Sequence record: OQ718158.1
Strand: one strand, 5' to 3'
DNA: 64,000 nt
Of the stretch, positions 28,435 to 49,703 are shown one piece after another. The position numbers were made by a program, and so were the translations under genes. The notes under the pieces were generated by a model, which had not been told where the DNA came from, made no database searches, and saw nothing but the letters and a program-made list of their open reading frames with translations. Position 1 is the first letter of the stretch. Each line of letters opens with the position of its first letter.

Positions 28435-28863
28435 ATGAATATCGAACAAACTATCCGTAACCACTCTTTCTTCGCTGCTGAAACTGGTCGTGTAATCGAG
28501 AGCGTCAAAATTGAAGAACTGATGATTAACGTTAAATATAAAGAACTGAATGATGAGATTAGCAGCACCATTTGTGCACTACGTGCTCCATTCCGTTCTG
28601 AAGCAGCTAAGAAACCTGCCTATGTACTGGCGATTGCATTGGGTTGTGTAGTGAAATTGGTCGTTGATGAAAATCAACTAAATATCAAAGTTGCTCCAAC
28701 CAACGATGAAGAAAACATCGACCTGAACTTTGAAGGTAATCTGGCTGAAGACGTATTCTTCCAACAATCACTGGTTTATGATTTCCGTACCGTAACTCAT
28801 GACCATATCAACTTTGTCAATGAGATGGTTGACATTGTAGCTGAATACGAAGCTTCCCTATAA
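28435..28863 (+). CDS. EExxFQxSTVxD paralog family member 1
   Basis: AEDVFFQQSLVYDF. Confidence 0.7.
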   Translation: MNIEQTIRNHSFFAAETGRVIESVKIEELMINVKYKELNDEISSTICALRAPFRSEAAKKPAYVLAIALGCVVKLVVDENQLNIKVAPTNDEENIDLNFEGNLAEDVFFQQSLVYDFRTVTHDHINFVNEMVDIVAEYEASL

Positions 28864-28873
28864 TTAGATTAAC

Positions 28874-28899
28874 AAAAGCCTCCGTAATGGGGGCTTTTT
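28874..28899 (+). terminator. Rho-independent terminator
   Basis: AAAAGCCTCC-GTAAT-GGGGGCTTTT. Confidence 0.8.
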
Positions 28900-28919
28900 C
28901 CAACATAAGGATATGTATA

Positions 28920-29471
28920 ATGATTGACCAAATTAAAATCCTAACTGAACAAATCACTGATTTTCTAGCAGATAAAGATGGATTCAGTACTGAAGTTAAA
29001 ATGCATGGTGTTAGTCTCGATGTAACTGCACCAAATGGCGAAACAACCAATTATGATATGTATGAAATCCTACTTTATACATTGGCTGTTCGTAAACTTG
29101 GTAGTGATATTGAACTAAACATTAACAAAACCGAGAACGGTGACCAAGTGTTTGCAATCAACACTGGTGCACAAATGGACGTAGTAGCTGAAATCAACAA
29201 GATCAACCAATCTTTTGTGGGTTTCAAGCATGATACAATCCAATCTGTGTTCCTGGGTAAACAAACCGGAAACAGCCACTGTCCTTATTGTGTAATGACA
29301 ACCTATAAGAATGGTAACTGGATGCGTCAGGATCTAGTACTTGCTGAAATGCTTTATGCAATCACACACGGCCTAGAACTTGAACTTGATGATAGCGTGT
29401 ACTGTTTCAAGAAAATCCGTAAACTTTCTGGTGATATACAAGCTCAATTAAAAGAATTAAATGATAAATAA
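28920..29471 (+). CDS. Hypothetical protein
   Basis: AAGGA RBS before ATG 28920; host-like codon use. Confidence 0.7.
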   Translation: MIDQIKILTEQITDFLADKDGFSTEVKMHGVSLDVTAPNGETTNYDMYEILLYTLAVRKLGSDIELNINKTENGDQVFAINTGAQMDVVAEINKINQSFVGFKHDTIQSVFLGKQTGNSHCPYCVMTTYKNGNWMRQDLVLAEMLYAITHGLELELDDSVYCFKKIRKLSGDIQAQLKELNDK

Positions 29472-29479
29472 TTATACCA

Positions 29480-29605
29480 GTAATGGTTAACATTATCATG
29501 TTACTTTCCTCCCTTACATAATAATGATGCGTTATTATTTTATTGTATTATTCCCCTTTTTGTACAAAATCTTTTTCGTACTGCCCCGACCTTCGGGGCA
29601 TTTTT
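29480..29605 (+). ncRNA. Candidate sRNA with anti-Shine-Dalgarno-like C-rich tracts ending in a terminator
   Basis: ORF-free gap; hairpins AACAT/ATGTT and ATAATAA/TTATTAT; TTCCTCCCTT and TTCCCCTTT; GCCCCGA-CCT-TCGGGGC-T5. Confidence 0.4.
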
Positions 29606-29627
29606 CTTGTCTAAATTTTGAGGTTCT

Positions 29628-30023
29628 ATGAATAATACTATTGGTAGTACAATATCTAAACCACTCTCTTATTACCTTGAAAAATTCAGAAGTACAAATG
29701 GTAAAAAATTTAATGGTATATACCAATTCTCACATAAAGAATATATTACAGTTGATTGTTATTCAAATAAACTTATGTACGTAGATGATACTGAATACTG
29801 TATGAAATTGTCATTGGATGTAGAATTAGATAAGTTAACATTTATTGAATATACATCCAAAAGAACATCATTTCTTGGGAAATGTAATCGAAAAGTATAT
29901 AAAAATATTTCAATGTACTTAAATGAAGATTACCACTTCCAACAAACAACGATTGAAGATGTTCTATTCAGTACTGAAGAATTGAAAGAACTATATTATT
30001 GGTATAAGAAATTTACAACTTGA
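29628..30023 (+). CDS. EExxFQxSTVxD paralog family member 2
   Basis: NEDYHFQQTTIEDV. Confidence 0.7.
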   Translation: MNNTIGSTISKPLSYYLEKFRSTNGKKFNGIYQFSHKEYITVDCYSNKLMYVDDTEYCMKLSLDVELDKLTFIEYTSKRTSFLGKCNRKVYKNISMYLNEDYHFQQTTIEDVLFSTEELKELYYWYKKFTT

Positions 30024-30048
30024 CATTATCGTGGATTTATCCTACACT
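30020..30048 (+). promoter_or_regulatory. Sigma70-type promoter
   Basis: TTGACA-N17-TACACT. Confidence 0.7.
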
Positions 30049-30078
30049 GTAAGATAATGATGAATAGAGGATAAATTT

Positions 30079-30489
30079 ATGAGTTTAGATTTACACAATG
30101 AACTAAAATATTATTTCGATTTGGATATATCACATTTGAACCAACACGTCAATTATATGACTAGTACTATTTGGTGGTCTGATGAGTTTGATGAACCAAA
30201 AATCCAACTTTGTGGTGATTTGTCCGTTTTGAGGTTGTATGCCCTTGATTCGGAAATGAATATCAAGATCACATACATACCATACACAAACAAACTTATT
30301 GTAAACACCCTAAACCCAGTTACAGTATTGAAAATTTCTGATTTGGACACGATACAGTCAGATGAATCACTATTCCAACGTTCTTTGATTGATGATATGG
30401 GTGGTATTTTATATGAAGATATTGTACAATTGAAGAAGATGTATAGTGAATTGTTAGAAATTAAAAACACAGTAATTGTGGGGAGTTGA
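30079..30489 (+). CDS. EExxFQxSTVxD paralog family member 3
   Basis: SDESLFQRSLIDDM. Confidence 0.7.
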   Translation: MSLDLHNELKYYFDLDISHLNQHVNYMTSTIWWSDEFDEPKIQLCGDLSVLRLYALDSEMNIKITYIPYTNKLIVNTLNPVTVLKISDLDTIQSDESLFQRSLIDDMGGILYEDIVQLKKMYSELLEIKNTVIVGS

Positions 30490-30490
30490 T

Positions 30491-30895
30491 ATGGTAAGTT
30501 TACTTGATATTGATAATACCAGTCTAGTACTGGCAAAAAAAGGTGTAATTCCCAATTCTACAAAAATTGATTATGCAGTTATTGAAACAAATATTGGAAA
30601 TATCTGGTATGACTCCGAAAGGGATATTGTGATTAGCTGCGTAGACAGTGACCGTGCTGAGTGTTGTAGGGTTGGTCATGACGGGCAATTTATTTTCGAA
30701 TTCCGTTACTGGAAAGATGCTAAATTCCATCATGAGCATGTTTCAATTACAGGTGTGTATTGCACCGAAGAATCGTTCTTCATGGATAGTACTGTTAATG
30801 ATTTTGGTTCAGTTACATTTGAGTACTATAAAAAAGTATACAACGTATCCAGAGAAGTAATGCGAATCATCAGAAATGCTGAGGGCCAAGATTAA
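30491..30895 (+). CDS. EExxFQxSTVxD paralog family member 4
   Basis: TEESFFMDSTVNDF. Confidence 0.7.
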   Translation: MVSLLDIDNTSLVLAKKGVIPNSTKIDYAVIETNIGNIWYDSERDIVISCVDSDRAECCRVGHDGQFIFEFRYWKDAKFHHEHVSITGVYCTEESFFMDSTVNDFGSVTFEYYKKVYNVSREVMRIIRNAEGQD

Positions 30896-30896
30896 C

Positions 30897-31271
30897 ATGA
30901 CTACTATATATGACATTCTAGGTGACTTGAATAAAAATATAGATAATGATTTTGTTATTGTTGGAACTACACAAAATATAATCCATCTTCCATTGGGTAC
31001 ACCAGATAGGTTAATTTTTAATATATACGGAAAAACACTGACATACCTACACAATGGTATGGTTATATTGGTACTTGATATTAAAGAAAATACAATACGA
31101 TATGCATATGACTTCAACGATTATTGGTCAAGAACCCATAGTATTGATATTGAGGAAGATGAACTATTTCAATTGTCGTTAATCGAGAAAAATGTAATAG
31201 GAGTTACCGAAATTGGCATTGTTAAAAAAGCATTAGAATATGTAAATAGCAAATTAAATGGTGAGCTATGA
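30897..31271 (+). CDS. EExxFQxSTVxD paralog family member 5
   Basis: EEDELFQLSLIEKN. Confidence 0.65.
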   Translation: MTTIYDILGDLNKNIDNDFVIVGTTQNIIHLPLGTPDRLIFNIYGKTLTYLHNGMVILVLDIKENTIRYAYDFNDYWSRTHSIDIEEDELFQLSLIEKNVIGVTEIGIVKKALEYVNSKLNGEL

Positions 31272-31723
31272 TGAAAATTGATGAAATAAAAAATCATTTT
31301 GAAATTGCATTGTCTTGTAAATTTGATGGCTCTTATGTTCCTGATCCAGAAGAGATAATTAGAATTTCCACATCGTTTTCGGAAGAGTACAATGTTCTTA
31401 TTGAGAAAACATATGACAGTACTGAACTCGCATTTTACAATAAGAATTCACGAACAACAACATTTATATTATTATATAACACAACATCGGATATAATAGA
31501 AATTATAACATGTAAAACAAGCAAAGATATACATTATGAGACTATCTCAAATGTGAGTTATTGCTCAACTGAAGAAGGATACTTTCAGGAATCTCTTATT
31601 AAAAATTTAACAGTTAGTTATTCTGATTTAAGCACTATAATCAATTGTGTTGAAAAGCTAAATGATTTCGTTCTATCTATGTTTGATATCACAGAGCAAA
31701 ACCCGAAGGTAATCAAATGCTAA
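31268..31723 (+). CDS. EExxFQxSTVxD paralog family member 6
   Basis: TEEGYFQESLIKNL. Confidence 0.7.
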   Translation: MMKIDEIKNHFEIALSCKFDGSYVPDPEEIIRISTSFSEEYNVLIEKTYDSTELAFYNKNSRTTTFILLYNTTSDIIEIITCKTSKDIHYETISNVSYCSTEEGYFQESLIKNLTVSYSDLSTIINCVEKLNDFVLSMFDITEQNPKVIKC

Positions 31724-32172
31724 ATCCAGGACAGTTTTTTCATTTACTTGGTATTACACCTATACCGGATTTAATCAGTGAAGCGAATCAATATCGTGAT
31801 ATAGGAATTGTATCTATGGAATACGATTCACCTGACTTTAAATGTTACGTAACATATGATTTGGTAGCCTATGAGTCAGAAACTGAGATAAAAAAACCAT
31901 CATACATTTTTGTGTTCATATATAATGATTATAGTGGTGATCTACTCAATGATGTTCATATTGACACATTTGAAATATGTGATAATATTATAACAGATGA
32001 TTCATCATGTACATTTGATTTATCAGAAAACAGTACTGAAGAGGCACTTTTTCAGTTGAGTACTGTTAGTGACACTGTACTAACTCTTGATGACATTGAG
32101 AAATTTAAAGAACAGCTTGACGCAGTACGTGAGATGTTCTATAATCATTATCCAGAAATCGAGTTCAATTAA
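31717..32172 (+). CDS. EExxFQxSTVxD paralog family member 7
   Basis: TEEALFQLSTVSDT. Confidence 0.7.
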   Translation: MLNPGQFFHLLGITPIPDLISEANQYRDIGIVSMEYDSPDFKCYVTYDLVAYESETEIKKPSYIFVFIYNDYSGDLLNDVHIDTFEICDNIITDDSSCTFDLSENSTEEALFQLSTVSDTVLTLDDIEKFKEQLDAVREMFYNHYPEIEFN

Positions 32173-32186
32173 CTAAAGGTATCAAA

Positions 32187-32777
32187 ATGACTAAAGTAGT
32201 TCGTAAACGCCACATGATGAACATGGATGAATTTCGCACCTTTGACAAATACCGTACTATGTTTCGTATGCTGTCACAGGGCCGTCCAATCGTCATTGTA
32301 ACGGAGAATTACATGTCACCTGAGATGATGTTCGGTAATTATGAAAAGGTCTTCATGTTGTACGTGAAGCGTGAATTGCTAACGATTAAGACCTTAGCTG
32401 AAGCTACAGATGAAGATATGGATGGTGATAATACATTTACCATGTGAGGAAATATATGGCAGAAAAACCAAAAGAACCATTGGACCGTGATGATGATTTT
32501 TACGACGAACGATATGGGGAATCAGATGAGTGAACATCGTGCAGTACTTAAAAAGATTTTAAATGAACTTGGTGATGAGTTTAATGTTACTGAAGAAGAA
32601 TATCAATGTTGGAAGAAGGATTTTGAACTCCTTGCTGAGTATGATAAAGTCTTCAATATGATTGGTGTCATTAGCCAGTACTTACTTGGTGGTGGTCGAG
32701 CCAGTGCTTCAATTCTTGCATCTGCGATCATCTGTACTTCTCGATGGTGCGATGAAAAAAGTCTGGAAGATTTCTAA
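32187..32777 (+). other. Two small hypothetical CDSs (32187-32447 and about 32455/32487-32777)
   Basis: ORF track plus RBS motifs. Confidence 0.55.
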
Positions 32778-32829
32778 ATAAGATGCTATAATGTATTATA
32801 GTACCTTAACAATATAAAAAGGATTTTAT

Positions 32830-33690
32830 ATGAAACCTATCAGAGTACTGTCACTTTTTAATGGAATGAGCGTTGGATATATGGCATTGGCAGATGCAGG
32901 TATTCCAGTTGAAAAATATTACTCATCTGAAATTGACAAGTACGCAATTGCTGAATCTTCCGAGAATTTTCCTGATATTATCCAGTTAGGTGATGTGACT
33001 AAGTGGAAAGAATGGGATATTGAGTGGGATAAGATAGATTTACTCATGGGAGGATTCCCATGTCAAGCCTGGTCTGTTGCTGGTAAGCAAGGTGGCTTGA
33101 ATGATATACGTGGACAGTTATTTTTGGTTATGGTTGACATTTTTGAGCACATCAAAAGTGTAAATCCAAACTTGCAATTTCTGTTCGAGAATGTTAAAAT
33201 GAAGGAAGATTTCAAAGAATACATTAATAGTATTTTAGGAATCACACCAGTACTGATAAATTCCCAGCATTATACGCCTCACTTCAGGCAGAGATACTAC
33301 TGGTGCAGTACTGATAAGCTTTTTATACCACCTGCATTATCAAATGCCCCTAAACTTCAAGATATCATTGAAGATGGTTGGTACACTGACAGAACCGCTT
33401 CGTACTGTATAGATGCTAACTATTTTAAGGGTGGTGATTGTAACCAGTACTTTAATAAATCAAGACGACAGTTGGTGTTTCGTGACCCAACGATTAATCG
33501 TCAATATCTATTGGAGAATGGTAAAAGAAATATTGACTATAGACACTTAAGTGTAGTAGAATGTTGTAAATTACAGGGTATTCCTGTAGATTTCTTTAAA
33601 GTGTCTAGTAAGACACAAGCATACAAAATGCTTGGAAATGGATGGACTATGCCAGTTATATCACACTTACTAAGAGAGATATTCTTTTGA
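32830..33690 (+). CDS. DNA (cytosine-5)-methyltransferase, orphan
   Basis: Motif I VLSLFNG, motif IV GGFPCQ, motif VI FENV, motif VIII RQRYY, motif X YKMLGNGW. Confidence 0.9.
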   Translation: MKPIRVLSLFNGMSVGYMALADAGIPVEKYYSSEIDKYAIAESSENFPDIIQLGDVTKWKEWDIEWDKIDLLMGGFPCQAWSVAGKQGGLNDIRGQLFLVMVDIFEHIKSVNPNLQFLFENVKMKEDFKEYINSILGITPVLINSQHYTPHFRQRYYWCSTDKLFIPPALSNAPKLQDIIEDGWYTDRTASYCIDANYFKGGDCNQYFNKSRRQLVFRDPTINRQYLLENGKRNIDYRHLSVVECCKLQGIPVDFFKVSSKTQAYKMLGNGWTMPVISHLLREIFF

Positions 33691-33692
33691 AC

Positions 33693-34172
33693 ATGAAGAA
33701 CTACCCCACCTATACTGAACGTGTAATGAAATTTCAACGTCAGTCATCAAAGGAAGAATTAGAATTTAATTTGTACTATCCTAATATTGGTGATGAGGTA
33801 TTCTATTGTTCTCATACAAAGAATGGAACTTTACTTAAATCTGGTAAAGGTATTATTGTTGATATGATTAGCACTTTCAAAGGTAAACTTAATGTAATGT
33901 ACAAAGTACAAGATTCAAGTACTGAGTGCATTCATGAAGTGATGCATAATATACCTGCATATCCAAAGGATTTTGTTGAGCTAATATCTCGAAGGGAGAA
34001 ACCTATGTTTTATTGTGGTTATGACAAACTAACCAAACAAATTATTCCTAATACTATGGGAAAATTTAAAAGTGATGTTAAAACTGAACTTAATAAGAAA
34101 TTAGGTTCATCATGGGAAACTGAAAACGAATTCATCGAAATTCGTTTGATTGAAGTTACTATACTCGATTAA
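33693..34172 (+). CDS. Hypothetical protein
   Basis: ORF from ATG 33693. Confidence 0.65.
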   Translation: MKNYPTYTERVMKFQRQSSKEELEFNLYYPNIGDEVFYCSHTKNGTLLKSGKGIIVDMISTFKGKLNVMYKVQDSSTECIHEVMHNIPAYPKDFVELISRREKPMFYCGYDKLTKQIIPNTMGKFKSDVKTELNKKLGSSWETENEFIEIRLIEVTILD

Positions 34173-34178
34173 TTACAG

Positions 34179-34201
34179 ATCCACGCTATGCGTGGATTTT
34201 T
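34179..34201 (+). terminator. Rho-independent terminator
   Basis: ATCCACGC-TAT-GCGTGGAT-TTTT. Confidence 0.8.
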
Positions 34202-34216
34202 CATAGGTGCATATAT

Positions 34217-34729
34217 ATGACAGTTCCTTATGTTAAAATTATTAATAATATCCTTGATTCGTGGGAAGATGTTATTACTGGTAAAAAGAAACCAATGCCA
34301 GTATACGCACTAACCGGAAGACTACAATTCAGAATGTCAAACCAAACTGAAACTTTTAATAATCATGATGTTCACATTACTATAACACCTGTACGTATTG
34401 TAATTAAAAAAAATCAAGATGATGAATTGACATTATCTATTGGTAGTGATAAAATCATTTTAAGTAATTTATCCGAAGAAGAATTCTTTCAACGTAGTAC
34501 TATCATCGATATGAAAGATTTCACATATGAATCATTGGTTGAAGTCAATGCACGTTTCAACGATATTCAGGAACGATTGCGACCAATCCTCCGCAAAGAA
34601 GAAGAAGCATGGAATGAAAGTGTGAGAAAAATGCAAGAAATGTTGAAAGAAAATATTAACAATCTGGGTAAAGCTACAATGGAATTTGGTAAATCTTTTA
34701 AACTGAACTTTTCAAAGGATCGTAAATGA
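34217..34729 (+). CDS. EExxFQxSTVxD paralog family member 8, with C-terminal coiled extension
   Basis: SEEEFFQRSTIIDM. Confidence 0.7.
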   Translation: MTVPYVKIINNILDSWEDVITGKKKPMPVYALTGRLQFRMSNQTETFNNHDVHITITPVRIVIKKNQDDELTLSIGSDKIILSNLSEEEFFQRSTIIDMKDFTYESLVEVNARFNDIQERLRPILRKEEEAWNESVRKMQEMLKENINNLGKATMEFGKSFKLNFSKDRK

Positions 34730-35181
34730 AAATTGATAATTTGATTCATGTCTTAGGGACTTTACATAAAATATTATTACATCTTAACGAGATGAATAAA
34801 CTAGGTTATAATGTCCATAATGTATTTGAACCTACATTTAAATATAACTCAATCACTGGAGATGGTAATTACATAATCGAATATACATATGAAACCGATC
34901 CAGACTTCTATCCTCTTACGTTGCGAATTTATCCAACAAGTCCGATAGGCATTCACGATATATCATCAATTTCACTTGATCCAGATGGTGAAACGAGTAT
35001 TGAATACAATAATGATTCAAAACCAGAATTTTACATTGATGATATTAAAAAGTTGTTCAATGATGAATATGTTTTCCAACAAAGTACTGTGCATGATGTT
35101 GGTAGTACTAATGGGCAATTTTGGAATACATGTTATTATCATATGATTGAAATTTGTAAATTACTAAAAGGTGTTGAATAA
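34726..35181 (+). CDS. EExxFQxSTVxD paralog family member 9
   Basis: NDEYVFQQSTVHDV. Confidence 0.7.
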   Translation: MKIDNLIHVLGTLHKILLHLNEMNKLGYNVHNVFEPTFKYNSITGDGNYIIEYTYETDPDFYPLTLRIYPTSPIGIHDISSISLDPDGETSIEYNNDSKPEFYIDDIKKLFNDEYVFQQSTVHDVGSTNGQFWNTCYYHMIEICKLLKGVE

Positions 35182-35564
35182 TGAAATACTGCATTGAAGT
35201 ACATTACACTACAGGTGATACTGAAAATTGTTATGACGTTCTTAATACAATTGATATTCAATGGTCTTCTAAAGAGGAAGCAGTTGCTGCTTTACAGTGC
35301 CTAAAAGAGCATTGGGTGTTTTATATGAAGCAAGATAATTGCTATACAAAAGAACACGAAACCATCGTCGAAAATGCTAAACAAAAAGAGTGGTTTGACC
35401 CAATATCACCAGCATATTCATTCTTGGTTAAAGTTGGTGATGTGACAGTTCCATTACGAACACCGTGGAACGGCTACTTTGAAACTCTTCATAATGCACG
35501 AGTTGTCGCTGTTGATAACCCTGAACAAATCGATTTCGATTCATTGGACTGGAAAAAACTATGA
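35181..35564 (+). CDS. Hypothetical protein
   Basis: 127 aa coupled ORF. Confidence 0.65.
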   Translation: MKYCIEVHYTTGDTENCYDVLNTIDIQWSSKEEAVAALQCLKEHWVFYMKQDNCYTKEHETIVENAKQKEWFDPISPAYSFLVKVGDVTVPLRTPWNGYFETLHNARVVAVDNPEQIDFDSLDWKKL

Positions 35565-36004
35565 CAGTACTGCACCGATTGAAGAAGGTTAAGCATCCAG
35601 TTGTATATGAGGACTGGAAACGACAGAAGTTGCTGGGTGATTTTTATTACCCAAAATCTAAAGTTCTTGCGAATTCAAGATGTACATATTGCACACATAA
35701 TCATAAAGATACAGTATTTGTTGAAATGGGTTTCCATCCATCAAACACAATGTTCACTACTAACCAAACGTTTTACAAATTTCATATACAAAAAGATTCA
35801 TTTACTGTTATGATTATAAAACATTTAGTTGAAGATCTGGCATTCAGTGAAGAACGAGTACCTTTATCATTAGTGGATATTCCTTATAATAATTTAGAGG
35901 AAATGTACTTCCAACAGTTGACAGTACAAGAAAACTTTGGTATGATAGGACTTCAAGAGTTAGAGATGATTAAGCAAATTCGTGATATCTACTTTAAGGA
36001 GTAA
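35561..36004 (+). CDS. EExxFQxSTVxD paralog family member 10
   Basis: LEEMYFQQLTVQEN. Confidence 0.65.
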   Translation: MTVLHRLKKVKHPVVYEDWKRQKLLGDFYYPKSKVLANSRCTYCTHNHKDTVFVEMGFHPSNTMFTTNQTFYKFHIQKDSFTVMIIKHLVEDLAFSEERVPLSLVDIPYNNLEEMYFQQLTVQENFGMIGLQELEMIKQIRDIYFKE

Positions 36005-36505: not shown

Positions 36506-36522
36506 ACTCCTATATTAATCAA

Positions 36523-38972
36523 ATGAGGATATACGAAATGGCTGGTGTTGATAAAATTTGTGAATTCAGTGGCGATTATGAAGGTTACGAAATGTACAAG
36601 TCCAAGCGTAATCACATTCAAGTTCTGTCAAAGTACCGTAAAGAATTCCGAGGACACAAAGCAACATTGTATGTTTTTGAGAATGGATATTCTGAAGTTT
36701 TCACAAGTGGTGGGTATAGTACAGCTAACATGGCACATATCAACCCAAACCCAACTGAAGATGATTGGAATAGTGGTAACGCTTTTCGTATTTCAATTTT
36801 GAATAAAATGAATCGTTACGACCGTTATTGTACATTCTTTGAAAATATTTCAGAATACAAGCAAGCATTAAAGAAATATAATCAACGCTTACTAATGAAT
36901 TATGATTACATTCTTCATGTTCCTACTGTTCCAGGTCAGGTTAATGGTCTGTATACGAACAGTACACATGATTTAACTGCGGTGAAGCGTCGCCTCAAAC
37001 GTATGTTGGGTTGTGGTAATTTAACAATCAAGGTTATGCGTAATGAATCAATGTATAACTTTTTAAATGTACTACACTACACATTGAAGGATAATAATGG
37101 AAACGATTAAGTTTATGTTTGAGGTGTTTGTTGCATTCATCTTATGTGCTGTATCTATTGCTATTGCTTTAATCCCAGTAATCGTTTACCAAGTTAATGG
37201 TGGTACAGACCCAACAGTTGATCTGTTTCTTCGTTGCGTGGGATTCTGCATATGGTTGGCGATGTTTATGTACTATATGCATCGTGAGGATTGATTATGT
37301 CATTGGAAAAAGTAATTATTTCTGAATTCCGAAAGTACATCATTGATTGTGATAGAGATACCCAGCGTAAGTTCAATGAGTATCTTGACAAATATCCATA
37401 TTTGATGTTTAATCCATTTGAAACTCAATCCGATGTTAATCTTGGATTTTACATTGGGTTTACACAACGAATTCTACAACAATATGAGATGAAACAGCCA
37501 GAGGTTTGGGTAGAAACTGATTCGAATGAGACGAATGTTTTTTATCTGTACTCTTATTATGCGGAAATTGTTAGTTCAATGACGCTAGAAGGGTATCTAT
37601 TCGTCAAAACATCTGATATTGAAAAAATATACATAGAACCTGTATCTTTGGATATGGTTGCCCAGCTTCCAACAGTTCAATATTTGGATGCAAATGAGTT
37701 GACATATTCGGTGTTTGAGTACCTTAACCGAGACGATTTAACTCAAGAAATTGAGAATATGGTTTCAAAATATACCACAACTCTTATATCTAATGGTTCA
37801 CTTAGAATAGAACTGATTTACGACGATACTAGTACTAATGCAGTACGAGGAACTCGAATTGGAAAAGTTACTATACGTGTTGTCCACAATGATGTAGTAC
37901 TTGGTTATATTTCGAAACGTGGTCATGACTTGTGTTTGATTAACACATATGTTATTGAACGAAAAGAATGGAACGATTTAATGCAAAAAATCGTAGACGG
38001 AAGTGGAATTCGTGATATAATGTGTAATGAGGTAGTGACAATGAATCCTGACATTGACTGTGATGTATATTTCCCAGTTCCTGGATTTACTCTACGTAAT
38101 TTTGGTACATTAAAGGGTACAAAATGAAAATTTTAGAAGTCTTACTTGAAAAGGATGCATCTGGTACACTTTATGTTGGTAATGAGTTTAGTCCTGATCC
38201 AATTGATATGATGCAGCGTATTCAAACACTGACCCAATCAATTTCAGTTAAACAACCTTTCCTAAAAGAATTGGAAATTCACTGCGATAAAGATATGGAA
38301 CAACATGATAATGTTATTTCTGATATCAAAAGTCTATTGACAAAGAATGGATATGTGGAATATAATCCTTCTATCGTAATCGTTATCCCTGACTTTATGA
38401 AAGGAACATTGTAATGACTAAAGAAGAAATGAAATCTCGCCTAAGCGAACTTAAGAAAGAACGAAAACTAGTCCGTTTGGACTGGGACATTCTTAACAAA
38501 AAAGATGAGCAATCATATGCTAACTGGAGTTCCGATAAAGTTCGCAATGACCGTTCCAAAGAAGACGCTAAACAGTTTATGGCATTGACCAAACGTTTAT
38601 CTTCACTGAATAGTGAAATTACAGGTCTTCAAAAGGAAATTATTTCAATTCTTCAAGTGGAGATCAACTCACTGTATGAATAAACATGAAGTGATTCATT
38701 TTGATGGTAAGATTTATGTACCAAACAATGATAGTACTGAATCTTATTATCTAATCAATGCAATTATGTCAGAAACACAAACATGTTGCCGTCAGCGTCC
38801 AGGTGAGTATGAGTTCAGTCAGACCATTGGTTATTATCGTTATACTGAACTTGATAAATTTACAATCGATTCTAAAAAAGTTATTGACGTTCTCACGAAG
38901 AACGGATATAATGAATCCGAATCAAACGAAACAGAGTTACCAGTCGTGAAATTTGTTCTAAAAAATAATTAA
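36523..38972 (+). other. Run of hypothetical CDSs (36523-37110, 37097-37294, 37291-38127, 38124-38414, 38414-38683, about 38676-38972)
   Basis: Coupled co-oriented ORFs, no recognised domain. Confidence 0.65.
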
Positions 38973-40358: not shown

Positions 40359-40387
40359 ATACCCAGTCTAGTACTGGGTATTTTTTT
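40359..40387 (+). terminator. Rho-independent terminator containing AGTACT
   Basis: ATACCCAGT-CTAGT-ACTGGGTAT plus T-run. Confidence 0.8.
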
Positions 40388-40398: not shown

Positions 40399-40791
40399 AT
40401 GACTGAATCAGAACTACATGAAATGATAGATTTCATTTATGAAATGATACAAGATAAAAATAACATCAATACAATTATTTCTGGTCCAAGACAAATTGGT
40501 AATCAAATGACATATTCTTTATCTTTATGGATAAAACAGAACTACAAAGTTGATTGTTTGTATTTCCGTCCTGATATTGATGCTTATTATTTTGTCAATC
40601 ATGATGCATTAATGAAACCAAATAAGCGTCCAGTTGATGATACCTTTGTGACACACCCATTTTACCTGGCTGATTCCGAAGAAGATGAGTTTCAAAAGAA
40701 CACAACGTTAAGCCCAGGTGAAATTTGCATCCCTTACACACTAAAAGATAAAATGATTTACATCACAGAAGTTATGAAAACATGCTGGTAA
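40399..40791 (+). CDS. EExxFQxSTVxD paralog family member 11
   Basis: SEEDEFQKNTTLS. Confidence 0.6.
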   Translation: MTESELHEMIDFIYEMIQDKNNINTIISGPRQIGNQMTYSLSLWIKQNYKVDCLYFRPDIDAYYFVNHDALMKPNKRPVDDTFVTHPFYLADSEEDEFQKNTTLSPGEICIPYTLKDKMIYITEVMKTCW

Positions 40792-41059: not shown

Positions 41060-41548
41060 ATGCCAATTCGTGGTGTACCAGAACCATTAATGGAAGTTAT
41101 TAAGCATGTTCGCATTGGAGATCGAGAAGTTAATCTTCGCCGTAATAACATTTTTTACTTTAAAACTTCAGAAATGAGTTCTGTACAGATTGTCATTGGT
41201 ACATCTATTAAGATTACTCGTGTACTTGATGGTAGTACTGACTTCGTTGAATATAATGTACTTACTAATAAAGTAACGCATATATATAAATGGAGTGGGT
41301 ATAAAACTATTAAGTATGAATTTGACTTAGCTAGAACTGAAGAAGAACGATTTATGCTGAGTACTATCAATCCAGCAAACTATCCTGACCTTGATGCATT
41401 TTTGCTAATTTTAAAATTGTATAATGAAGCAAATCAGAAAGCCAAAGATTATGATAGAATCATGTATGAACGCCGAAAAGAACGTGCACAAAAAAGTTAT
41501 GATCTGTATGATAGCCCATACGTGAAATATAGTAAGGGGTCGAAATGA
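41060..41548 (+). CDS. EExxFQxSTVxD paralog family member 12
   Basis: TEEERFMLSTINPA. Confidence 0.65.
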   Translation: MPIRGVPEPLMEVIKHVRIGDREVNLRRNNIFYFKTSEMSSVQIVIGTSIKITRVLDGSTDFVEYNVLTNKVTHIYKWSGYKTIKYEFDLARTEEERFMLSTINPANYPDLDAFLLILKLYNEANQKAKDYDRIMYERRKERAQKSYDLYDSPYVKYSKGSK

Positions 41549-41949
41549 ATAAAGAAGTTCAAATTATCATAACTCCACCTATACAAAGTCTGGATGTATC
41601 CATTAGTGATTTTTTGGAAAAATACTATGAATGGTTTAATGAAGATTCAGTAATTTATAACCATTCATTACCTGATGGTTTCGTTGAGCTTATTGAATTA
41701 AATGCCAAATCACTATACTTCTGTGTTGAATACAATGATTATATGACAGATGAAGCATATCGTTTTCGTTGTACATTGTATCCTAACCATTTTTCCATTG
41801 GTTATAAAGACTATCAGTACTGCACCACAAACTATAGTGTAGAGGAAGAATTTCAGTACAATTTACTTTATCCTGATTTGGATTATACGATTGCAGTACT
41901 GTTGACTAAAATCATGGATTTTTATAAAGATAAATATAATGCAGCCTAA
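41545..41949 (+). CDS. EExxFQxSTVxD paralog family member 13
   Basis: VEEEFQYNLLYPDL. Confidence 0.6.
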   Translation: MNKEVQIIITPPIQSLDVSISDFLEKYYEWFNEDSVIYNHSLPDGFVELIELNAKSLYFCVEYNDYMTDEAYRFRCTLYPNHFSIGYKDYQYCTTNYSVEEEFQYNLLYPDLDYTIAVLLTKIMDFYKDKYNAA

Positions 41950-42124
41950 GACATTTGATGAGTGGTTTAATCTACACTATAATATAAATGCAGCAGATAT
42001 ATACTATTTTAAGCTTGAATTGTATATATCATTGCGTAACCCAATTGAGTACTATAACAACATTATCAATTGTGATGATTTTGGTACATATTTTAGTATA
42101 GCAGTCATGGACAAAATAAGATGA
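41939..42124 (+). CDS. Microprotein, divergent MTxxEW-family member
   Basis: MQPKTFDEWFNLHYN..., 61 aa, ATGA-coupled to the next ORF. Confidence 0.5.
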   Translation: MQPKTFDEWFNLHYNINAADIYYFKLELYISLRNPIEYYNNIINCDDFGTYFSIAVMDKIR

Positions 42125-42291
42125 CACACAAAGAATGGTTAGATGAACTAAAATTTAAACATAATCCTTTTGGTTTTGGTATACGCCAAGGTCATTATGA
42201 TGTGTTAAAAGATAAACAACTTTTCAAATCATTTGTACTTGATGAGGATAGTAATCACTGGTACATCTATGAGCTTGCAATTAGGAAATAG
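42121..42291 (+). CDS. 56-aa MTHKEW microprotein (not in ORF track)
   Basis: Manual translation MTHKEWLDELKFKHNPFGFGIRQGHYDVLKDKQLFKSFVLDEDSNHWYIYELAIRK. Confidence 0.65.
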   Translation: MTHKEWLDELKFKHNPFGFGIRQGHYDVLKDKQLFKSFVLDEDSNHWYIYELAIRK

Positions 42292-42482
42292 AAGATATAG
42301 TATGAGAGTAATTATTAATCCTACAAAAAGTTTTATGTCATCAGTGTACGGTGCTGATGATATTATCCGCATGTTACCACGTATTGGAATTGATGGAATT
42401 GAAGTGAGAAAATACGGTGATTTATATTATGTGGTAGATTCCAATGGTAAAAGGATCAGTGATAGCTTATTCTTCAGTACTA

Positions 42483-42651
<169 letters not shown>

Positions 42652-42664
42652 CGAGGAATCCAAA

Positions 42665-43379
42665 GTGACTAAAGCAGAACTTGTAGCATTATTGGAATCA
42701 TATCCCGATGATGCATGTATTGAAGTTGTTCATAGTGCGAGACATTTTGACATTGAAGATGTAGTACGTTATAATGATAAAGGTGTACTCATCATGGAAC
42801 TATGTATTGGTGAAATGAAAACTGTACCCGAATCAGAAAAACGTAAAAATAGTAAACCGTAAGGAAAATAAAATGGAATCTACTCTATTAGAAGTTATTA
42901 ACTCATTAAACGCTGGCGACAATGTTCAAGTACTCCTACAGGGATACCGTGTAAAAGGTTCAGTAGTTTTAGTTAATGACACCACTGTTGTTGTAACTGA
43001 AACTAACCCGTTTGACAGTAATGAACTTGCTAATATCCATATTGATATTAAAAGTATTATTGGTGTTGGTGTAACTAAACCACAAGAATAACAATTGTTA
43101 TTGGGGATTACTATGCATTTTGAAAAATTCAATACAAATCGTAACACACGCATTGACGTTCTTTATGAAACACAAGACTCAATAAGCATTCGTACACGTA
43201 GTGGTGATGTATATCATGACTGTACTATTGGTTGGGAACAGGGAAGAACACGTAGTGCAGAATTCGATAACTATCGCTTCTACCAAGGGGACACCACAAT
43301 CTGGCCTGAAGACGTAGAAGATATTGCGTTTGAAGATGAACATAAAGATGAATTTATAAAATTTAATCCCGAATCATAA
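42665..43379 (+). other. Three small hypothetical CDSs (42665-42862, 42873-43091, 43113-43379)
   Basis: GAGGA/AAGGA/GGGGA RBS motifs. Confidence 0.65.
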
Positions 43380-43384
43380 ATATT

Positions 43385-43512
<128 letters not shown>

Positions 43513-43516
43513 AAAT

Positions 43517-43602
<86 letters not shown>

Positions 43603-43619
43603 CAATTAAAGGTTAAACC

Positions 43620-43780
<161 letters not shown>

Positions 43781-43784
<4 letters not shown>

Positions 43785-43941
43785 CACATGAAGAATGGAT
43801 GAATGACATTAATTTTAGATATTCGGGTATCGGTAAATGGCTAAAGTATCATTGGGAATTCATTTCAGAGCCACATCTGTATGATAAACTTATCAACGAT
43901 CCAGCATATGAAATGTACTTAATTGAACTACTGGTACGAAT

Positions 43942-43945
<4 letters not shown>
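43781..43945 (+). CDS. 54-aa MTHEEW microprotein, array unit 2
   Basis: MTHEEWMNDINFRYSGIGKWLKYHWEFISEPHLYDKLINDPAYEMYLIELLVRI; ATGA-coupled. Confidence 0.75.
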
Positions 43946-44113
<168 letters not shown>

Positions 44114-44114
44114 G

Positions 44115-44535
<421 letters not shown>

Positions 44536-44540
<5 letters not shown>

Positions 44541-44565
44541 CTAAATAGTTCAGTACTGATATAAT
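44536..44565 (+). promoter_or_regulatory. Repeated promoter cassette copy 2, drives the ncRNA
   Basis: CTTGACTAAATAGTTCAGTACTG-A-TATAAT. Confidence 0.9.
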
Positions 44566-44571
44566 GAATTC

Positions 44572-44912
44572 CACAATCAGACGTATATGGTGTAAGTTAC
44601 GTCGATGTAATCCAGAACAAGATCTCTGGTACTCTAGGAAGTGGTGAATGTTAACCTAGACGGGTTTGATAATTGGACGATAGGCAATTATTACTTGACT
44701 AGCAGGTTTAAACTAGAGGTGACAGTCCTTTACCAAACTGGAAAACCGGATGGACTTTTATTTAAAAGGGTAAGGCGTGGAAATATGTTTACAGTAGTTG
44801 CTTTTAGTAGCCTGTACGCCCCACGTCAAGGTAGCCGAAAGGCAAGTTAAAACGGGTGGTTATAAAGCTGAATTAACAGCGGCGTTTAAAAGCGTCACCA
44901 TCCATTTTTTTT
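44572..44912 (+). ncRNA. About 340-nt highly structured ncRNA of unrecognised family
   Basis: Own promoter; GC-richer than flanks; helices GACGTA/TACGTC, CCAGA/TCTGG, CTAGG/CCTAG, GATAATTG/CAATTATT, GGCGTGG/CCACGTC, GCC-GAAA-GGC, GGGTGGT/ACCATCC followed by T8. Confidence 0.75.
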
Positions 44913-44928
44913 AATTAAAGTTGGTGAT

Positions 44929-45570
<642 letters not shown>

Positions 45571-45572
45571 AA

Positions 45573-45730
<158 letters not shown>

Positions 45731-45755
45731 CAAAAAAAAACAATGAGAGGTATAA

Positions 45756-46508
<753 letters not shown>

Positions 46509-46510
46509 AA

Positions 46511-46539
46511 TTGACATATCATTGGATGAGGTGTAATAT
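46511..46539 (+). promoter_or_regulatory. Sigma70-type promoter
   Basis: TTGACA-N17-TAATAT. Confidence 0.65.
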
Positions 46540-46582
46540 GGTTCAAGAAGAAAACTGGGGTTTTTAACACAAAGAGGCCAAT

Positions 46583-46629
<47 letters not shown>

Positions 46630-46654
46630 TGCTGCACCTATGCCTACTCTTGGC

Positions 46655-46725
<71 letters not shown>

Positions 46726-46726
46726 A

Positions 46727-46766
<40 letters not shown>

Positions 46767-46769
46767 TCA

Positions 46770-46841
46770 GGTCGATTAGTTAAAAGAGTATAACACGGAC
46801 CTTGTAAGTCTGAATAATCAGTGCAATTCTGATATTGACCT
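46770..46841 (+). tRNA. tRNA-Thr(TGT), no encoded CCA
   Basis: GGTCGAT/ATTGACC, D arm GTTA/TAAC, CGGAC-CTTGTAA-GTCTG, ATCAG-TGCAATT-CTGAT; ends T-CAA. Confidence 0.8.
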
Positions 46842-46882
46842 CAAAAATGATATTTTTCTTACATATAAATACTCCATAATAT

Positions 46883-47290
46883 ATGGAGAACTATATGAAA
46901 GAAAAACGTTATTGTACATGTTGTAAAATTGAATTGGTTCGAAAGGGCCAAACAAAATATTGTAGTGTTGCATGTCAACAAGAGCTACAATATCAACAGA
47001 AAGTTGATAAATGGCTTAACGGTGAACATCCTGGATATAAAGGTATTACCATACAGTTATGTCCATTTGTGAGAAGATATCTACATGAAACACGCGGAAC
47101 TGCATGTGAAGAATGTGGATGGGATAAACGTCATCCAATAGATGGTGCAGTACTGACAGAAGTTGAGCACATTGATGGTGATGCTACAAATAATGACCTA
47201 CCAAATTTAAAAATCCTTTGCCCTAATTGTCATTCGATGACACCAACATTCAGAGCAAGGAACAAGAACTCCGCAAGGAATCGTAAATAA
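46883..47290 (+). CDS. HNH endonuclease (tRNA-adjacent, homing-type); start may be 46895
   Basis: CTCC..YCSVACQ zinc motif; CEECGW..EVEHIDGDATNNDLPNLKILCPNCHS. Confidence 0.9.
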   Translation: MENYMKEKRYCTCCKIELVRKGQTKYCSVACQQELQYQQKVDKWLNGEHPGYKGITIQLCPFVRRYLHETRGTACEECGWDKRHPIDGAVLTEVEHIDGDATNNDLPNLKILCPNCHSMTPTFRARNKNSARNRK

Positions 47291-47306
47291 TTTTTTAAGG
47301 TACAAT

Positions 47307-47726
47307 ATGACATACAACATTGTTAAAATGGTGAACTACGTATTAAAAAACAACGCATGGTCACTGCATGATGTACAATTAGAAGATATTGGTGAAGTTA
47401 GAGTTTTTTGCTATGATGACGATTTGAACGAAACCACAGATTTGAGTAAATGTTTTAATATTTTTCTTGGTTATGAAATCGATAATCATTTTTATTCATT
47501 TGATGTGTATGTTGAACGAGTTAAAATCAGAATTTCTAATGTAAATAGTGATTATTTTGACACTATTATGATTGAATTGAATTTTGACGATATTGATACT
47601 GAAGAAAAATTCTTTCAGTACTGTCTCGTAAACGATCTAAATGGATTGACATTTGAGGACATTAAAGCTATACTTATAGTTCAAAGATTAATTCCAGAAG
47701 AGGTTATAAATCCCTTTAATGACTAG
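47307..47726 (+). CDS. EExxFQxSTVxD paralog family member 16
   Basis: TEEKFFQYCLVNDL. Confidence 0.7.
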   Translation: MTYNIVKMVNYVLKNNAWSLHDVQLEDIGEVRVFCYDDDLNETTDLSKCFNIFLGYEIDNHFYSFDVYVERVKIRISNVNSDYFDTIMIELNFDDIDTEEKFFQYCLVNDLNGLTFEDIKAILIVQRLIPEEVINPFND

Positions 47727-48078
47727 TTTAATAACTCGTATAATGCAAGATGTTCGTAAGAATCTTCATACTGGTAATTTTGATGATCCTAACATAAAAA
47801 TATTATGTTATGATGTATTCACACTGGTACACCCATCTGAATCTAATAATATATACATAGCATATACTTCTCCTAATATTTTGTATCAATTTGACTTATA
47901 TAGTACAATGGCTAAGATAACATTAGATGTTTCTAAGGAGCCATTTTTTATAGCAGTACGTGATTTTGAGTACACAGAAGAGTCATTATTCCAGTACTCA
48001 ATGATAAATGACATTGGTGACTTGACATTAGAAGAGATAAATGTTATAGTTGGTATGTGTCGTTTGATTAATCCATAA
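47719..48078 (+). CDS. EExxFQxSTVxD paralog family member 17
   Basis: TEESLFQYSMINDI. Confidence 0.7.
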   Translation: MTSLITRIMQDVRKNLHTGNFDDPNIKILCYDVFTLVHPSESNNIYIAYTSPNILYQFDLYSTMAKITLDVSKEPFFIAVRDFEYTEESLFQYSMINDIGDLTLEEINVIVGMCRLINP

Positions 48079-48091
48079 CTCGGAGCTTAAT

Positions 48092-48567
48092 ATGTTTTTG
48101 AATTTGTTATGCTTATTTGGTCGTACATTGGTTCTTGCTATTATTCATACACCTGGTATTCGTAATTATGTTTCTTATGAATTTAAGAAAAATTACCACA
48201 ACAATACTGAAGTTCGTGCAACTAAGATGTGCAAAGACTTCAATGGAGATGTTCCACCATTCAAGAAGTACGAGGATGAATAATGGAATTTATTGTTGCA
48301 CCTGATGAACTAAAAACATTCACGTTCCGAGACAATAACAATTATCCTTATACAAATCATTCATTGAATTCATTGCATGTTATTTCAATCATTGCATCTG
48401 AATACAGAGACAATCCATGTATTGATTTTAAAACCACTGATGGTGAATATACATGGGTAGTTCCGAACGATAAATACAGTTATCAGGGTGCAGTAGAGAT
48501 CCGCGACTCGATTCTAAAGCAAATCGAAGATGGACATACTCATCCTAAACTAAACATTCAGTACTGA
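48092..48567 (+). other. Two small hypothetical CDSs (48092-48283, 48283-48567)
   Basis: GGAG RBS; coupled. Confidence 0.55.
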
Positions 48568-48580
48568 AATCGTTTAACCG

Positions 48581-48716
48581 GATAGCTTCTAGTCGGTACT
48601 GAATTCCTCCTTTTGTCTAGAAGCTATCACTCTTTTAAAGTATAATGATATCACCCTCATGGTTCATTATATTCGTTACCCTCTAACAGTATCTTTTTAT
48701 TCCTCTTTGATACTGT
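48581..48716. ncRNA. Three-hairpin candidate sRNA with CCTCC-type loops (GGA loops on the minus strand)
   Basis: GATAGCTTCTAG/CTAGAAGCTATC, TATAATGA/TCATTATA, ACAGTATC/GATACTGT; loops TTCCTCCTT, CACCCTCA, TTCCTCTTT. Confidence 0.55.
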
Positions 48717-48726
48717 ATTTTAGAAG

Positions 48727-48756
48727 TTGACATTTTTACTTCTACTGTGTTATACT
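48727..48756 (+). promoter_or_regulatory. Sigma70-type promoter
   Basis: TTGACA-N18-TATACT. Confidence 0.7.
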
Positions 48757-48806
48757 TAAGGCTGATTCATTATGAATCGGCCTTTTTTCTTGTGGGGATT
48801 AATGTA

Positions 48807-49223
48807 ATGAATAAAGAAGTTATTAGTTTAATGGATGAGTATATCAACCAAACATATCGTTTTATATTTTTTAATGCATTTGAGTCCAGGACAACGTATC
48901 ATTCTGGTGAATATGAGATAATAACTGGATCATTTCTTAACGGATACATGGAGTTTTTAGAACAAAGCGATAATGTTTTCATTTCCATATCTGAAAAACA
49001 TGGTGATGATTATGTTATTGATGTATGGCCTAATAAAGTAGAGATTGACACTACAAAGAAAATTGTAATTGATGTGGACGAATCATTGTATGATTTAACT
49101 GAAGATATGTATATGCAACTAAATTTCGTATACGATCTAACTAACATAAGTTATTCTAATCTAAGTAAATTATTTTATATTTGTGGTGTACTACATAAAA
49201 ACGTACAACAAAATAAAGGATAA
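48807..49223 (+). CDS. EExxFQxSTVxD paralog family member 18 (divergent)
   Basis: TEDMYMQLNFVYDL. Confidence 0.6.
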   Translation: MNKEVISLMDEYINQTYRFIFFNAFESRTTYHSGEYEIITGSFLNGYMEFLEQSDNVFISISEKHGDDYVIDVWPNKVEIDTTKKIVIDVDESLYDLTEDMYMQLNFVYDLTNISYSNLSKLFYICGVLHKNVQQNKG

Positions 49224-49295
49224 ACATTTAAATGTTGACAATTGACAACATAAATGGTATCTTTGAAATTGCCAGAAACCTACGAGGAATATGAT

Positions 49296-49703
49296 ATGGT
49301 CAAAATTTTAAGTGACAATGCGGTTGATATTGTCATTGATGTACTTGAAAACAGTAATACATTTGAGAAGAAACACAGTACTGTATACTTCGGTAAAGAT
49401 TGTTGGCTGAACTATACATCTGATAGTTCATTTATAATTCGTGTTGAGAAGGGTGATATTGGATTAACGATACATGCTTCCTATACTAAAACAATCACTG
49501 TTATTGCCAACAAGCCAAGTACTTCTGATTTCTGGGATAGAATTGATGATTGTGACCATTTCATGTCAACATTCTATAAAACAGAAGAAGAACATTTCAT
49601 GGATAGTACTGTCAAAGAATTAGCTATTCCATTTAAACTTATGAAAGCAGCAAGAGATTTTATTTTAAAATACAAAAAAATAGGAGTTGATGATGCAATT
49701 TAA
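49296..49703 (+). CDS. EExxFQxSTVxD paralog family member 19
   Basis: TEEEHFMDSTVKEL; GAGGA RBS before ATG 49296. Confidence 0.7.
   Translation: MVKILSDNAVDIVIDVLENSNTFEKKHSTVYFGKDCWLNYTSDSSFIIRVEKGDIGLTIHASYTKTITVIANKPSTSDFWDRIDDCDHFMSTFYKTEEEHFMDSTVKELAIPFKLMKAARDFILKYKKIGVDDAI

Follow-up and report, generated by a model that had tools for sequence, protein, structure and literature searches.

A paralogous family of small proteins sharing a conserved motif, predicted to be helical, in Escherichia phage vB_Ec-M-J and other Rak2-like jumbo phages

The question raised by this locus is why a phage would keep 19 small genes, all labelled 'hypothetical protein', whose products appear to have little more in common than one short acidic motif near the C-terminus. 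These genes lie between positions 28435 and 49703 of a stretch of 64,000 nucleotides (hereafter the window) from the genome of Escherichia phage vB_Ec-M-J (OQ718158.1, 378,573 bp), an Asteriusvirus of the 121Q/PBECO4/phAPEC6 group. Window positions equal record positions minus 248,000; the G+C content is ~35% and coding is almost wholly on the + strand. Here, we confirm that the 19 open reading frames (ORFs) are real genes of one paralogous family, 17 of them firm and two divergent, and we discuss the possibility that their products act early against the host.

A paralogous family in two arrays

When the window was scanned with the strict pattern [ED][ED]xxF[QM]x[ST][TLM][VI]x[DE], 10 matches were found, all on the + strand, whereas 500 residue shuffles of the + strand ORFs gave a mean of 0.002 and a maximum of one. 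A looser pattern gave 17 matches against 0.1 expected, and in the ORFs starting at 41545 and 44929 the motif lacks one residue, which brings the total to 19. Chance recurrence of the motif was thus rejected. The preliminary description of this DNA had reported at least 19 such ORFs in tandem blocks; both the number and the blocks were borne out, and the nine motif strings that it quoted were all found in the ORFs to which it assigned them.

The motif starts at residue 86-118 in all 19 proteins. In most of them 32-44 residues separate the motif start from the C-terminus and 20-32 residues follow the motif end (59-74 in two members). BLASTP detected similarity upstream of the motif only for the adjacent pair 47307/47719; therefore, the earlier claim that the proteins share only the motif is right as far as sequence is concerned.

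An exhaustive profile search of 1.84 billion representatives yielded 91 clusters (50% identity) at E<=0.001. Among them, 82 full-length representatives, pairwise less than 50% identical, all carry the motif, with column shares of T 63%, E 95%, E 92%, x, Y/F/L 35/29/24%, F 98%, Q 87% (M 12%), x, S 87%, T 60%/L 36%, V/I/L 50/35/13%, x and D 79%. Each single window protein was then aligned by hhalign to the profile of these 82 representatives. A probability of at least 80% was obtained for 17 of the 19 ORFs, and the divergent 41545 (22%) and 40399 (6.7%) ranked next; every other window ORF, including the neighbouring 35181, 28887, 49687 and 51087, stayed below 3%, so that no extra member was found among them.

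The family is not limited to 28.4-49.7 kb of the window, the interval given in the preliminary description. The N-terminal part of a 20th member (EcMJ_519, + strand, 63831..64000) is cut by the window end, and its motif, EESVFQQSLI, lies past it. The rest of the phage record was scanned in separate pieces with the family profile and the motif, and about 44 more members were found elsewhere in the same genome. There is a second array of 38 at genome 27.3-55.9 kb, just inside the 21.5-kb left terminal repeat, and, with the truncated 20th member at 311.8 kb counted in, seven scattered members at ~107.8, 120.4, 121.0, 311.8, 317.7, 334.4 and 353.7 kb. Thus, vB_Ec-M-J has ~64 motif-bearing copies (38 + 19 + 7), all on the + strand, and the two arrays of 38 and 19 are co-oriented tandem arrays. 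The union of the profile and motif criteria gives ~68 copies; an iterated in-genome profile converges on 61 ORFs, 56 of which satisfy both profile and motif. Since the record has 654 annotated features, the family accounts for roughly one tenth of the protein genes. In phAPEC6, 41 members were counted in the equivalent of the left array and 19-20 in that of the right array.

Outside vB_Ec-M-J, every family member that has a name is called 'hypothetical protein'. The named phage sources are Asteriusvirus, the Salmonella phages Munch, 7t3 and SE_PL and the Klebsiella phages fENko-Kae01, RaK2 and phiKp_21; other sequences come from Escherichia coli and Salmonella isolate assemblies with ~350-kb contigs, and the remainder from metagenomic contigs of up to 350 kb. 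Named members were therefore restricted to Rak2-like jumbo phages of Enterobacterales or to the ~350-kb isolate contigs. A structure search of viral models retrieved only uncharacterised proteins of PBECO4, CBB, GAP32, RaK2, fHe-Yen9-03/04 and an Erwinia relative. In Yersinia phage fHe-Yen9-04, a homologous stretch of 40 kb contains eight members interspersed with tRNA and HNH genes, as in the window. From this distribution, we conclude that the family is old and specific to the Rak2-like jumbo phages. At the nucleotide level, the interval 28435-36004 is 81-99% identical to 36 other jumbo coliphage or Salmonella phage records of the same group (100% for vB_Ec-M-J itself), and at least 80% of it is covered in 31 of the 37 related records.

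As a separate observation, many NCBI assemblies of E. coli and Salmonella enterica isolates hold contigs of 110-352 kb with these phage proteins, which indicates that whole jumbo-phage genomes are present inside bacterial assemblies, as either a carrier state or contamination.

All 19 window members have 1:1 syntenic orthologues in phAPEC6, and copy-number turnover between these close relatives was not observed. Their ratios of non-synonymous to synonymous substitution rates (dN/dS) against phAPEC6 are 0.08-0.49 with a median of 0.26, which identifies them as genes under purifying selection; the median of 51 neighbouring ORFs is 0.14 (Mann-Whitney p=0.012). Amino-acid identity to phAPEC6 is correspondingly 72.7% for the members and 87.5% for the neighbouring ORFs (p=0.013). 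Syntenic conservation under purifying selection implies that each copy is individually maintained.

Predicted fold and comparison with known families

AlphaFold2 was run for two paralogues. The model of the product of 47719-48078, for which an alignment of orthologues and paralogues was used, has a mean predicted local distance difference test score (pLDDT) of 90.9 and a predicted template modelling score of 0.85. It comprises a helix at residues 4-15, strands within 26-79, a helix at 87-96 that coincides exactly with the motif and a helix at 104-114. The model of the product of 49254-49703, which has no detectable N-terminal similarity to the former protein, has a mean pLDDT of 67.3 and contains a helix at 21-33, seven strands, a motif helix at 111-120 and a helix at 127-141, in the same order. 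Both models thus have one architecture in common: a helix, 6-7 strands, the motif helix and a final helix. That the segment after the motif is helical, as proposed before, is supported by both models. On the other hand, the earlier picture of a variable head joined to a constant dock disagrees with them. As two N-terminally dissimilar paralogues give the same predicted single-domain architecture, the 'heads' would be diverged copies of one fold, and sharing only the motif does not extend to structure. In the models, the motif helix is built into a single compact domain and is not an appended docking peptide.

Conservation was examined in the 82-cluster profile. All strongly conserved columns fall within the motif; in the strand region only an alternating hydrophobic pattern is kept, and a weaker second helix-start pattern, [TS]-x-E-[DE], opens the last helix. 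When the motif is read as a helix, its variable positions 2, 6 and 10 share one face and the rest is occupied by conserved residues, which suggests that the predicted helix is packed on more than one side or is part of an interface. Among the sequences of a single orthologue group, the motif hardly varies (11 of 13 columns), and variation is greatest in the preceding loop, the final strands and the final helix.

The preliminary description recognised no named domain, and our searches agree. Pfam gave only weak matches (E 0.01-0.16), different for each member and far below the cut-offs, which were rejected; NCBIfam gave no family match, the PADLOC defence catalogue assigned none of its families to any of the 19 members, and the family profile found no match at E<=10 among all PDB chain sequences. 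Nothing related to anti-defence families was above threshold in Pfam or NCBIfam, no dedicated anti-defence library having been searched. With Foldseek against PDB, neither model had a significant match (best E 0.24 and 0.012, template modelling (TM) score at most 0.35); the match at E 0.012, to a retinoic-acid-binding protein mutant, had a TM score of 0.24 and was treated as noise. In PHROGs, the members are split into ~20 groups of 'unknown function' (including 17453, 24941, 23322, 30548, 38573, 21500, 34619, 24027, 23719, 13866, 12674, 9317, 33987, 34636 and 36582) that are joined only by weak cross-matches through the motif region; the unity and the size of the family are not recorded there.

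Nor is the family mentioned in the literature on RaK2, CBB, phAPEC6, Sharanji, UE-S1 and fEgEco12 or in a comparative survey of jumbo phages. The RaK2 paper reported that ~10% of the gene products were paralogues, without further remark, and 22 paralogous ORFs were counted in CBB (PMC5259590). A literature lead on Avs5/JADA was discarded, as it concerns unrelated nucleus-forming phages.

Large eukaryotic DNA viruses carry multigene families at their genome ends. In Bacillus phage G, a zinc-ribbon expansion of ~35 copies has been described (PMC7824862). The present family resembles such lineage-specific multigene families of viruses in its dozens of diverged paralogues, its tandem co-oriented arrays in the genome end or early region and its small proteins that keep one short conserved signature. 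It differs from them in having its own unmatched fold, in comprising ~10% of the phage genes and in its stable 1:1 orthologues within the genus. Large paralogue expansions in big viruses are therefore already known, whereas the fold, the motif and the scale of this family in a cultured coliphage are new.

Expression context and possible roles

In the window, sigma-70 consensus sites with at least 11 of 12 matches occur 34 times on the + strand and not once on the - strand, against ~2 expected. Eight of the 34 are perfect (12/12), with positions 4170, 22367, 36477, 38337, 42602, 42747, 53451, 60947 and the region of 61596. Genome-wide, such sites are most crowded in two places: at 280-330 kb, a range that includes the window array, and in the terminal repeat, which has the highest density of all (14 in 10-20 kb) and is the only part with sites on the - strand. 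In CBB, the homologous region, including a phage sigma factor, was read as a probable early host-takeover region (PMC5259590). The region described there, CBB_390-546, is similar in its short hypothetical genes, clustered RpoD-type promoters, phage sigma factor, tRNAs and HNH endonucleases, but its genes were treated as unrelated ORFs, whereas here most of the ~120-190-aa genes of the two arrays belong to one family. For transcriptomics of Asteriusvirus, nothing relevant was found in the literature.

The virion proteome of phAPEC6 comprises 62 proteins identified by mass spectrometry (PMC7247149 Table 1), and none of them falls in gp079c-gp148c or gp348-gp548. The right array (gp083c-gp134c) and the left array (gp407c-gp466c) of phAPEC6 are both inside these empty ranges. 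In addition, 15 of the 19 window members have an isoelectric point (pI) below 5, compared with 31% of the other window ORFs, and the remaining four are neutral or basic. No membrane-like segment was found in the 19 members, whereas two annotated membrane proteins of the window scored 2.5-3.0 on the same scale.

Considering these data, we tentatively favour the interpretation, to which we give slightly less than an even chance, that the family consists of early, cytoplasmic, non-virion binders for host takeover or anti-defence built on one new scaffold. The descriptive part of it (membership, shared predicted architecture, promoter context, absence from the virion and purifying selection) is much more secure. 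Each protein would be a single small, soluble, usually acidic alpha+beta domain with an N-terminal helix, a 6-7-stranded sheet, the motif helix (T-E-E-x-[YFL]-F-Q-x-S-[TL]-[VI]-x-D, opening with a helix cap), a short loop and, at the end, an amphipathic helix. The copies would be non-redundant early effectors produced in the host cytoplasm. Their diverged sheets and loops would allow each copy to bind its own target, from the host or from a rival element; the invariant helix may both hold the fold together and display one conserved polar/acidic patch, which would serve self-association or a shared partner. An anti-defence or host-takeover arsenal is compatible with the early sigma-70-type promoters, the absence from virions and the faster non-synonymous evolution relative to neighbouring genes.

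Several points weigh against this interpretation. Early timing is deduced from promoter consensus and by analogy, and the binding of putative partners or targets and the host-takeover or anti-defence role are likewise inferred. Within the genus, the set of genes is stable, whereas many anti-defence loci typically gain and lose genes rapidly, and dN/dS is well below 1, so that an arms race is not indicated by the gene-wide values. Furthermore, the confidence of the second structure model is only moderate (pLDDT 67).

An alternative that we consider unlikely is that the motif is simply the folding nucleus (helix cap and core) of a fast-diverging domain, the copies having heterogeneous, weak or dispensable roles and no common mechanism. 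A helix that opens with T/S and then acidic residues is consistent with a capping box, a second pattern of this kind opens the last helix, and F, [TL], [VI] and [FLM] are core-type hydrophobic positions; there is no other conservation in the protein. However, a Q at 87%, an S at 87%, a D at 79% and two E at more than 90% across clusters less than 50% identical would be unusually strict for a purely structural element. Moreover, each copy has been retained as an orthologue and is under purifying selection, which argues that the copies are not dispensable filler.

The same polar residues lend something to a more doubtful alternative, proposed in the preliminary description, in which the paralogues serve as adaptors or decoys, linking many targets to a single partner bound by the motif helix: the conservation of E, E, Q, S and D (79-95%) exceeds the needs of a hydrophobic fold core. 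Such a common partner may exist, and the most concrete candidate is a phage ClpA-like double-AAA+ unfoldase, EcMJ_316, of 762 aa with AAA, AAA_lid_9, AAA_2 and ClpB_D2-small domains. The gene of this ClpA/ClpB-like protein is located at genome 168677-170965, outside the window, and no Pfam domain covers its first ~198 residues among the 25 best matches listed. The unfoldase is conserved at full length, with 60-75% identity, in RaK2, GAP32, fHe-Yen9-04 and Erwinia relatives, the clade that also has the family (41% in a PA5oct-like Pseudomonas phage), and CBB has a ClpP-type subunit (PMC5259590). Since this co-distribution is only clade-wide, it is not independent evidence. The phage proteins have some likeness to ClpS-type AAA+ adaptors as small alpha/beta proteins with conserved acidic residues in a phage that has a ClpA-like ATPase, but their fold order differs, and neither Pfam nor NCBIfam gave a match to ClpS, nor Pfam to any other adaptor. 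The motif is also predicted to lie in a structured helix of a compact domain, unlike the flexible tail of typical docking peptides. In a still less probable form of this idea, the ~64 paralogues would be a phage targeting system, in which the variable sheet recognises different proteins of the host or of rival elements and the invariant helix delivers them to the ClpA-like unfoldase and a Clp-type peptidase. If true, bacterial viruses would have their own equivalent of the substrate-receptor families by which large eukaryotic viruses hijack host degradation machinery.

It is equally improbable that the proteins form acidic oligomers, like the doughnut of p32/MAM33, through their conserved helices and, as mimics of DNA or other polyanions, titrate out basic proteins of the host (nucleoid proteins or nucleases, for example). 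Structures of p32 consist of a helix, ~7 antiparallel strands and two C-terminal helices, and the predicted secondary structure of both models follows this order along the chain. Together with the acidic character of 15 of the 19 members, the likeness to p32/C1QBP/MAM33 (1p32, 3rpx, 3jv1, 1yqf) includes the recurrence of p32/C1QBP/p22 chains among the top-ranked weak Foldseek matches of the two independent models (1p32, 3jv1, 6szw and 7te3 for the first; 3rpx, 7te3 and 1yqf for the second). However, these superpositions are not significant (E 0.24-1.5, TM score 0.19-0.35, root-mean-square deviation 10-17 A), the phage proteins are ~60 residues shorter and have no sequence match to any solved structure, the MAM33 profile of Pfam had no match at E<=1 for 10 members, and the four neutral or basic members do not fit.

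The remaining explanations fare worse. The motif could be a targeting or cleavage signal of proteins that are packaged in the capsid and then ejected into the host, as phAPEC6 has a capsid inner body (PMC7247149) and phages of this kind encode prohead proteases. This is very improbable and largely refuted by the finding that none of the ~60 family members is among the 62 virion proteins; the genes are also behind early-type and not late-type promoters. A protease-cleavage site in particular was dropped, given that the motif is predicted to be a helix within a folded domain and the proteins are absent from virions. Finally, chance or a translated DNA-level repeat (a regulatory or recombination signal) has practically no probability left: the strict matches share one frame context and recur at a single position in similarly sized ORFs, 82 diverged clusters retain the motif, and the variation of synonymous codons (Phe TTC:TTT 8:8, Ser both TCN and AGY) shows that conservation is at the protein and not the DNA level.

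Genes of the window and meaning of the family

The evidence for each member consists of the motif scan, the hhalign probability and the dN/dS of the syntenic phAPEC6 orthologue, which are given in this order below; all members are on the + strand. Member 1 (EcMJ_432, 142 aa, 28435..28863) has the strict motif EDVFFQQSLVYD (96.7%, 0.08), and a sigma-70-like promoter (11/12) is located upstream of it at 28140..28169 (+). A terminator-like hairpin at 29582..29600 (+) just precedes the block of members 2-7. This block begins with EcMJ_434 (131 aa, 29628..30023; EDYHFQQTTIED, 96.4%, 0.17) and EcMJ_435 (136 aa, 30079..30489; DESLFQRSLIDD, 97.9%, 0.29), followed by member 4, EcMJ_436 (30491..30895, the longest ORF starting with TTG at 30476; EESFFMDSTVND, 97.5%, 0.17), and member 5, EcMJ_437 (30897..31271, longest ORF from 30876; EDELFQLSLIEK, 95.6%, 0.46). 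It ends with member 6, EcMJ_438 (31271..31723; EEGYFQESLIKN, 98.4%, 0.30), and member 7, EcMJ_439 (151 aa, 31717..32172; EEALFQLSTVSD, 97.4%, 0.21). Member 8 (EcMJ_445, 170 aa, 34217..34729; EEEFFQRSTIID, 98.1%, 0.20) has an extra C-terminal helical tail, and members 9 (EcMJ_446, 151 aa, 34726..35181; DEYVFQQSTVHD, 95.3%, 0.26) and 10 (EcMJ_448, 147 aa, 35561..36004; EEMYFQQLTVQE, 97.0%, 0.26) lie downstream. Two genes inside this part of the array are not family members, a Dcm-type cytosine methyltransferase at 32830-33690 and an unrelated 127-aa ORF at 35181-35564.

A second terminator-like hairpin (40359..40381, +) stands just before members 11-13. The divergent member 11 (EcMJ_462, 130 aa, 40399..40791) has the loose motif EEDEFQKNTTLS (6.7%, 0.40), and its orthologues carry EEDEFQK[SR]TV. 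Member 12 (EcMJ_464, 41060..41548, longest ORF from 41000; EEERFMLSTINP, 90.5%, 0.18) is basic, with a pI of 9.4, and has a long C-terminal tail, while the motif of the divergent member 13 (EcMJ_465, 134 aa, 41545..41949), EEEFQYNLLYPD, is one residue shorter (22%, 0.08).

Member 14 (EcMJ_475, 121 aa, 44175..44540; EEEYFQTSTVQE, 98.3%, 0.45) is present in 44 phage records, and an 11/12 promoter at 44116..44143 (+) ends 32 nt before its start. Member 15 (EcMJ_476, 123 aa, 44929..45300) again has a motif one residue shorter, EDEFQKSTVYEN (80%, 0.35). Members 16 (EcMJ_481, 139 aa, 47307..47726; EEKFFQYCLVND, hhalign 98.5%) and 17 (EcMJ_482, 119 aa, 47719..48078; EESLFQYSMIND, the first structure model) are the only pair with full-length BLAST similarity; an 11/12 promoter upstream of member 17 is found within member 16 at 47646..47674 (+). 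Another 11/12 site at 48727..48756 (+) is upstream of the annotated start of member 18 (EcMJ_485, 48807..49223, longest ORF from GTG 48747; EDMYMQLNFVYD, 95.8%, 0.26). The last complete member of the window, member 19 (EcMJ_486, 149 aa, 49254..49703; EEEHFMDSTVKE), is that of the second structure model.

Five annotated tRNA genes (Ser-TGA, Ser-GCT, Met, Asn and Thr) are interspersed with family members at 43423-46842, and an HNH endonuclease follows at 46895-47290. We also noticed a second, tiny paralogous family of 54-56-aa ORFs (+) at 42121-42291, 43620-43784, 43781-43945 and 43942-44106; three of them follow one another directly, immediately before member 14, and within one pair the identity is 70%. 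Real genes are overlapped in other frames by ORFs at 30648-30860, 36545-36802 and 54416-54616 (+) and at 28251-28571, 30153-30536 and 30809-31117 (-); for the three on the + strand, the dN/dS against phAPEC6 is 0.8-2.5, and these three are unlikely to be genes. Elsewhere in the genome, the 21.5-kb direct terminal repeat (1-21525) is crowded with ~50 very small ORFs, and 333206-350767 (- strand) holds another large paralogue array, 14 tandem genes annotated as 'regulator of chromosome condensation' (RCC1-like). The 'DNA condensation protein' products gp003-gp010, gp549 and gp551 of phAPEC6 are present in its virion proteome (PMC7247149) and may correspond to this RCC1-like array.

The 121Q/PBECO4/phAPEC6 coliphages have been sequenced many times, with more than 80% of their genes labelled hypothetical, and about one tenth of the genes can now be assigned to one family, whose predicted fold has no match among solved structures. 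To our knowledge, it is one of the largest paralogue expansions in any cultured phage. A large share of the 'dark matter' of these genomes is thereby reduced to one problem, since a single solved structure and a single identified partner would inform ~60 genes per genome in five or more phage genera. Should the copies act as specific binders, they would represent a natural library of small stable scaffolds against proteins of E. coli, Salmonella or Klebsiella, and a route to what nucleus-less jumbo phages must neutralise early in infection.

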